In this document: in pieces, positions 13,806-14,016 of the stretch | How the letters are laid out: every line of letters begins with the position of its first letter | Position numbering within the stretch: position 1 is the stretch's first letter | Assembly: GCF_001194135.2 (NCBI RefSeq) | Contig: NC_068990.1 | Location: 69,225,378-69,278,520 of the forward strand | DNA from: Octopus bimaculoides | Taxonomy: Eukaryota | Direction: 5' to 3' | Length of the DNA stretch: 53,143 nt | Program-made: the position numbers and the translations under genes | The notes under the pieces: generated by a model | Database searches by the model: none | What the model was told of the DNA's origin: nothing | What the model saw: only the letters and a program-made list of their open reading frames with translations

Positions 13806-14016
13806 ATCTCTGAAACTGCCATGATATTTGCCGGTGTTGGTGTCACTCGTGAACTTATTCCTGTCTTACCCATTGTGCATTACAACATCGGAGGTATCCC
13901 AACCAACTATAAGGGAGAGGTTATTAACATACAGACCAGAAACTGGAAATGTTATTGTTCCTGGTCTCTACGCATGTGGGGAATCTGCTTGTGCATCTGT
14001 CCATGGAGCAAATTGC
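13806..14016 (+). pseudogene. SDHA: Succinate dehydrogenase flavoprotein subunit fragment, frameshifted
   Basis: [40 protein letters not shown] / (T)[29 protein letters not shown] matches [43 protein letters not shown]...[21 protein letters not shown]; extra A at ~13927, no splice sites at the ends. Confidence 0.93.

Follow-up and report, generated by a model that had tools for sequence, protein, structure and literature searches.

Isolated SDHA sequence in an octopus genome

How did a short internal piece of the coding sequence of SDHA (succinate dehydrogenase) come to lie in a 53,143-nt stretch of the Octopus bimaculoides genome in which no other part of this gene is found? A preliminary description of this stretch, which was analysed at its whole length and is referred to below as the window, had proposed that an internal fragment of SDHA mRNA was inserted there without a poly(A) tail. 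The question therefore has two parts, namely, whether the fragment is a copy of spliced mRNA and by which route such a copy could have reached its present site.

The fragment comprises 209 nt of SDHA coding sequence on the forward strand (window 13804-14012) and covers aa 394-462 of the 674-aa Octopus SDHA (Table 1). It is translated in two frames, with 13806-13925 read in frame 3 (40 aa) and about 13929-14013 in frame 1 (29 aa). The joined peptide matched the FAD_binding_2 family in Pfam (E=2e-13) and the mitochondrial complex II flavoprotein subunit in PDB (E=3e-29), where the best match was Ascaris SDHA, followed by the human and pig proteins. When the query of the homology search was padded with X to 565 aa, Octopus SDHA became the top match, the closest relative being Octopus sinensis SDHA (XP_029640684, 674 aa) with 86% aa identity, compared with at most 81% for other animals. 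These Pfam, PDB and Octopus SDHA matches, together with the single 1-nt insertion that was seen, confirmed the original identification of the piece. Its location had also been given correctly (13806-14016), except that the edges of nucleotide homology fall at 13804 and 14012, 2-4 nt off at each end. The extra A sits within GTTATTAACATAC, the native counterpart of which is GTTATTACATAC.

Table 1 Features of the SDHA fragment, its junctions and its surroundings (positions are those of the window)
Feature	Position	Strand	Description
TGCTGA, left copy	13800..13805	+	Spans the 5' junction; last two bases (GA) also SDHA-homologous; k-mer comparison
Exon 9-derived part	13804..13919	+	Last 116 nt of coding exon 9, aa 394-431, ...ISETAM...PTNYKGE; blastn matches: O. 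bimaculoides (L007) 26561-26676, O. sinensis (L006) 32405-32520
Exon-exon junction, exact	13919..13920	+	GGGAGAG|GTTATT; GT..AG intron of 556-1887 nt in native genes
Exon 10-derived part	13920..14012	+	First 92 nt of coding exon 10 plus one inserted A, aa 432-462, VITYRPETG...SVHGAN; blastn matches: O. bimaculoides (L007) 28171-28262, O. sinensis (L006) 34408-34499
Extra A, frame-shifting	13926..13927	+	AA versus native A; single gap in the global alignment to native spliced exons
TGCTGA, right copy	14014..14019	+	One base past the end of homology; k-mer comparison
Stem-loop	14040-14052 / 14073-14085		Perfect 13-bp stem AAAACAGCATTGA / TCAATGCTGTTTT around a (CTA)n loop; 27 nt downstream of the fragment
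Short interspersed repeats	12035-12262, 14478-14564, 14617-14796, 14949-15034, 15693-15916, 16055-16138
Decayed retroelement ORFs	46053-46790	+
	47154-48771, 19025-19510, 24548-25321, 22745-23443	-

Both ends of the fragment are exon-internal: exon 9 starts 82 nt further upstream, exon 10 runs on for 109 nt, and the 3' end is ~640 nt short of the SDHA stop codon. As for splice sites at the edges, 13804 is not preceded by AG, nor is 14012 followed by GT. Neither a poly(A) tail nor any other A-run was found 3' of the fragment, where the bases after 14012 are TTGCTGATTAGAG..., and the sharp ends, absent splice sites and absent poly(A) of the preliminary description were all borne out by the window sequence. 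A continuation of the homology into 14013-14022 (GGAGCTAA...TTCATTGCTGGAT in the mRNA) was considered and rejected: it would extend over at most ~10 nt and need deletions of 15, 4 and 1 nt, and it is indistinguishable from chance or from the junction repeat. A second SDHA piece was found in the 53-kb window neither by tblastn with the O. bimaculoides SDHA protein nor by blastn with an octopus SDHA mRNA contig, and tblastn with an approximate human SDHA query likewise detected only one SDHA piece. The fragment is thus located away from its parent gene, in a window with no other SDHA exon or intron sequence.

Native SDHA genes and the missing intron

The key question is whether native SDHA genes carry an intron at the point that the fragment crosses uninterrupted. 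The native loci of O. sinensis (L006), O. bimaculoides (L007, where the gene extends over 36 kb on CM046610.1) and Argonauta (L008) were compared with the window, as was a spliced mRNA contig (L009); SDHA relatives from small genomes, none of them cephalopod, played no part in the comparison. The native octopus gene consists of 15 coding segments, which were identified and ordered by tblastn of the protein P0188 on the O. sinensis locus. The intron that had been expected after ...PTNYKGQ is present in O. bimaculoides (1494 nt), O. sinensis (1887 nt) and Argonauta (556 nt); in all three octopods it is a phase-0 intron with GT..AG borders, and its position corresponds exactly to window 13919|13920. 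The native ninth coding segment ends with ...GGGGACAG (longer form ...CCAACTATAGGGGACAG), the intron begins with GTTAGTGA and ends with ...ATAAATAG, and the tenth coding segment begins with GTTATTACATAC (longer form GTTATTACATACAG). Across the same point, the window reads ...CCAACTATAAGGGAGAG|GTTATTAACATACAG, with exons 9 and 10 joined base-perfectly. The reading of GTTATTAACATACAG as a 15-nt micro-intron was rejected: native exon 10 begins with the same bases, and their removal breaks the frame.

No intron homology was found in the window, and its homology to the genomic loci is confined to two blocks, neither of which extends past the exon edges. The alignment to the SDHA mRNA, which had been proposed as a check along with that to the gene, gave a single collinear block (positions 672-879 of the spliced octopus contig against 13804-14012) with 93.8% identity. 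Moreover, among the exon-sized ORFs that match the bare 69-aa fragment, many end with ...NYKGQ followed by intron read-through (proteins of up to 121 aa), indicating that introns in this position are widespread among eukaryotes. Since the intron is present in three native genes and is skipped by the fragment, the latter is almost certainly derived from spliced mRNA, and we put the probability that it is a copy of spliced octopus SDHA mRNA at roughly 0.95. The absence of the intron, the exon-internal ends and the lack of an A-run support the proposed internal mRNA fragment devoid of poly(A).

As regards the annotation of the native gene, the 2015 SDHA model of O. bimaculoides (P0311), which is labelled 'subunit B', covers the protein only up to residue 366, where the eighth coding exon ends. 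The gene was evidently broken in the draft assembly, immediately 5' of the two exons from which the fragment derives. The 2022 model of the same species (XP_052827269) is complete.

Relationship to octopod SDHA, decay and age

The 90% cluster of XP_029640684 includes the O. bimaculoides, O. vulgaris and Argonauta orthologues and a Logan transcript. Counting substitutions only, the nucleotide identity of the fragment is 92.8% to O. bimaculoides, 92.3% to O. sinensis, 94.2% to the octopus mRNA contig and 84.6% to Argonauta; the corresponding differences over 208 aligned sites number 15, 16, 12 (Logan octopus mRNA) and 32. The octopod-specific VITYRPETG stretch is also found in the fragment, which has GGI and GES in common with O. 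bimaculoides, the O. sinensis counterparts being GGV and GEA. The homology search also returned an SDHA-like protein from a marine eukaryote transcript catalogue (P0187, not in the window), in which the segment MIFAGVDV...DNLKLTDKG occurs twice in tandem, and this duplication accounts for its anomalously high search score. It probably reflects either an artefact of transcript assembly or a eukaryote gene with a tandem exon duplication.

Nine substitutions are private to the fragment, two of them synonymous and seven nonsynonymous (D>G, P>L, T>I, M>I, R>K, Q>E and D>N), and the first four of the latter strike residues that are identical in every SDHA compared. On the fragment's own branch, omega is ~1.2 (152 nonsynonymous and 52 synonymous sites); in pairwise comparisons among native SDHA genes, it ranges from 0.01 to 0.13. 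Such an omega value, the replacement of invariant residues and the frameshift point to a pseudogene under neutral drift, and the fragment, as judged from its sequence, is non-functional and evolves without constraint. Tests for a functional SDHA exon or paralogue failed on every count: there is a frameshift at 13926/7, no AG or GT at the edges, no neighbouring exon and no purifying selection.

These observations bear on the suggestion that the fragment is a real SDHA exon with an assembly error, or else a DNA-level duplication of two exons followed by precise intron loss. Sequence similarity itself, and nothing more, speaks for either version. The native gene, however, is found elsewhere, complete with its 15 coding segments and the intron, the window contains no neighbouring exons or splice sites, four invariant residues are replaced, and omega is far from that of a constrained exon at ~1.2, which together contradict the earlier refuting alternative that the extra A is merely an error in a real exon. 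A precise DNA-level deletion of the 1.5-kb intron is itself very unlikely, and we regard these explanations as the least credible of those considered.

Another question is the age of the copy. Four O. bimaculoides-specific changes are absent from the fragment, as are five of the six that are specific to O. sinensis, and at position 180 of the fragment a derived state is held in common with the O. bimaculoides/Logan pair. At position 109 (window 13912), the fragment has AAG, a state that in the alignment is otherwise found in Argonauta only and that encodes the Lys of NYKG; Argonauta and other molluscs likewise have Lys, and all three native Octopus genes compared have AGG (Arg). This Lys is either a retained ancestral state, in which case the copy predates the Octopus K>R change, or a back-mutation. 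Parsimony thus places the fragment neither before nor after the split between O. bimaculoides and O. sinensis, which indicates an origin near that split. The private divergence of the fragment is 0.043 per site, and half of the dS between the two species is 0.10, which suggests, with a wide error, an age of approximately half that of the split. The sequence would thus predict presence of the insertion in the O. bimaculoides clade, its presence in O. sinensis and O. vulgaris being doubtful. Consequently, the description of the insertion as 'fairly recent' holds in a relative sense only, and the copy is not very recent: identity is high (92-94%), but the nine private substitutions and one indel in 208 nt put the branch near the species split.

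Junctions and flanking sequences

At the 5' junction, the flank ends with ...ATAAAACTAATGCT|GAATCTC, and the 3' junction reads ...GGAGCAAA|TTGCTGATTAG; GA and AA are common to the flank and the mRNA at the fragment junctions. The two copies of TGCTGA that hug the junctions (Table 1) are suggestive of a putative short target-site duplication or of staggered ends. A junction-hugging 6-mer repeat occurs in 1.4% of 47,054 same-spacing position pairs in the window, an empirical p of ~0.014 that comes from a post hoc test. TGCTG recurs at 14077 and 14178, and because of this local recurrence, the repeat may be due to chance, which weakens the case. A 21-nt imperfect direct repeat (13610-13630 / 14143-14163) was also considered as the target-site duplication of a 523-nt composite insert and was rejected, since about 1-2 such pairs are expected by chance per 700 nt (binomial estimate).

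The flanks of the fragment (12270-13803 and 14013-14477) contain no repeats found elsewhere in the window or in 84 kb of the O. sinensis and O. bimaculoides SDHA loci, and none in common with about 150 kb of octopod DNA. When 12250-14500 was compared with Pfam in all six frames, SDHA was the only match, and tRNA and Rfam scans of the flanks detected no family. A 131-aa minus-strand ORF abutting the fragment (13450-13842) had no Pfam match, and its single match among 1.8 billion representatives (29% over 42 aa to an internally repeated, unrelated protein) was judged spurious, which argues that the flank is non-coding. With no domain, RNA family or repeat in the flanks, the fragment is not visibly inside a transposon. 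The same site was sought in other assemblies by exact-sequence look-up of two window ORFs at the locus, and no match was obtained.

A further feature nearby is the stem-loop 3' of the fragment. Its (CTA)n loop also pairs with the (TAG)n run that follows, forming a second CTA/TAG palindrome, and (GGC)4 and (GTA)n lie 3' of it within 14040-14141, a segment with a predicted DNA fold of -17.3 kcal/mol (z=-2.5). This segment may represent either a fragile site that forms hairpins or the tail of a retroelement that has escaped recognition.

The second of these possibilities would suit a LINE template-switch chimera, in which the reverse transcriptase began on its own RNA tail and jumped to the SDHA mRNA, so that 14040-14141 would represent the 3' tail of a LINE or SINE. 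The 13-bp stem-loop and the microsatellite 3' of the fragment have the orientation expected for the tail of stringent-type LINEs, and LINE reverse transcriptase fragments are common in the window. However, neither 14013-14169 nor the stem arms have a second copy in about 150 kb of octopod DNA, there is no significant target-site duplication around the fragment and tail (the 21-nt pair at 13610/14143 being at chance level), and the position of the TGCTGA repeat between the fragment and the putative tail is a misfit. We consider this origin rather improbable. The hairpin, lying 27 nt downstream of the fragment, is also what could be cited for capture by a DNA transposon in the style of Helitrons or Pack-MULEs; such capture nevertheless copies genomic DNA, introns included, and here the intron is cleanly absent. 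Moreover, searches for terminal inverted repeats, for a CTRR end 3' of the hairpin, for transposase remnants and for further copies in about 150 kb of octopod DNA all found nothing, which leaves transposon capture with a very small probability.

Genomic surroundings

The window is rich in mobile and simple repeats. Six short interspersed repeats (Table 1) have 70-90% identity to sequences present up to a dozen times each in the O. sinensis SDHA introns; no tRNA-like head was detected in them by ARAGORN, and they presumably represent octopus SINE or LINE-tail families. The decayed retroelement ORFs comprise a LINE reverse transcriptase C-terminus with a PHD finger, three more reverse transcriptase fragments and one LTR-type integrase fragment. 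The LINE ORF at 46053-46790 is 99% identical to UniParc UPI0006951AAC (2015-era) and 72-88% identical to O. bimaculoides and O. vulgaris proteins, and relatives of the LINE reverse transcriptase/PHD-finger ORF in Hydractinia and Nematostella show about 50%. Microsatellites such as (CA)n, (TATG)n and (TATC)n are very dense (e.g., at 500-800, 2450-2890, 6040-6590 and 40720-42100), with a minisatellite of roughly 24 nt at 2450-2890, and the window is interrupted by eleven N gaps of 10-704 nt.

In such surroundings, the fragment might be the remnant of a longer canonical processed pseudogene that was 5'-truncated at insertion and later lost its 3' part and poly(A) by deletion, or it might be a DNA-level duplication of a retrocopy piece from elsewhere. 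The age of the copy (~4% private divergence on a branch near the species split) would allow for rearrangement, and transposon insertions and microsatellites riddle the window. A sequence with a single 1-nt indel in 209 nt, however, does not favour large deletions abutting both ends exactly. In addition, the lack of any other SDHA piece in the 53 kb means that the copy was not split by insertions, and a decayed continuation past 14012 would amount to about 10 nt at most, at the cost of three indels. Although we rate this explanation above the other alternatives, it is unlikely.

Possible route of insertion

The route that we favour, to which we give about an even chance, is the joining of a short cDNA at a break or staggered nick. 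The preliminary description had named template switching and cDNA-patched repair as examples, which the sequence alone does not tell apart from a trimmed longer retrocopy. In the favoured route, a short stretch of SDHA mRNA would have been reverse transcribed by an enzyme that LINEs supplied in trans, retroelement reverse transcriptase being abundant in this genome. The resulting cDNA would then have entered a chromosomal break or staggered nick, each end being joined through no more than about 2 nt of microhomology. Such an insertion would be independent of a poly(A) tail and would resemble a templated sequence insertion, or cDNA patch, rather than a canonical poly(A)-primed processed pseudogene. 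Under the staggered-cut version, the pre-insertion site would have had the flanks ...AAAACTAATGCTGATTAGAG... with one TGCTGA. The absence of poly(A), the exon-internal ends, the short length and the minimal junction homology all fit a cDNA joined at a break or nick.

Traces of reverse transcriptase occur near the fragment, as LINE reverse transcriptase fragments in the same window, and O. bimaculoides has been reported to contain RTE and Dong LINEs with complete ORFs (PMC9115989). In human genomes and cultured cells, breaks patched with poly(A)-less cDNA have been described (PMC5110952). The flanking TGCTGA duplication, if real, is not expected for a patch at a blunt break, and class 2 templated insertions have no flanking duplication (PMC5110952). 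A further point against the favoured route is that the sharp ends of the fragment could have been produced by later deletions.

A bolder and more doubtful extension of the favoured route is that the fragment is a germline scar of RNA- or cDNA-templated break repair in a cephalopod, the break having possibly been provoked by the adjacent palindrome and trinucleotide repeat. We hold this tentatively. If true, it would extend the process of class 2 templated insertion from humans to molluscs and suggest that poly(A)-less internal mRNA fragments form a searchable class in octopus genomes.

Significance

The fragment is ordinary genomic debris, unusual only in that both of its ends are exon-internal. 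Taken alone, it matters little, being one dead, retro-derived gene scrap without any sign of function in a genome rich in transposons. It is nevertheless a clean, datable example showing that cellular mRNA is reverse transcribed in octopus germlines and that short pieces devoid of poly(A) become fixed there. As such, it is relevant to the question of which reverse transcriptases act in trans in cephalopods, a group whose LINE activity is a matter of debate. If its presence or absence varies by species, the fragment may serve as a rare-genomic-change marker for Octopus phylogeny. It also calls for caution in annotation, as it is neither an SDHA exon nor a paralogue. It would become somewhat more interesting only if such poly(A)-less internal mRNA patches proved, in a survey of whole genomes, to be a class of their own in cephalopods.

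Comparison with known systems

Processed pseudogenes and other LINE-mediated retrocopies share with the fragment an origin from spliced mRNA and an intron-less, ectopic, disabled and neutral state. Among the features by which retrocopies are recognised, homology to the parent mRNA, absence of introns and an ectopic location are all found here, and poly(A) is lacking. Unlike processed pseudogenes, the fragment also has no 3'UTR, ends in coding exons on both sides and measures only 209 nt, and any target-site duplication is doubtful and no longer than 6 nt.

Chimeras that arise by template switching of reverse transcriptase, such as U6-L1 in mammals, join an internal piece of a cellular RNA to a LINE or snRNA partner. 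The fragment resembles them in being such an internal piece that does not include its own 3' end, but no LINE or snRNA partner was recognised beside it. Helitron and Pack-MULE captures are likewise isolated internal gene pieces in non-coding DNA, as the fragment is with a hairpin nearby; in contrast, their capture is DNA-based and keeps introns, whereas the fragment is intron-less and has no transposon termini.

The remaining comparison is with the templated sequence insertions of Onozawa and Aplan (TSI/TSIP), class 2 of which consists of short reverse-transcribed RNA patches at double-strand breaks (PMC5110952). Class 2 insertions are known from human cells and genomes and carry no flanking duplications, whereas the fragment comes from a mollusc, is known from sequence alone and may have a 6-nt flanking repeat. 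In common with them, the fragment is a short insert that was templated by a transcribed gene located far away and passed through an RNA intermediate; it shows neither poly(A) nor use of a poly(A) signal and has minimal junction homology, and the templating by RNA from a distant region that is expected of class 2 is seen here in the spliced junction within the insert.
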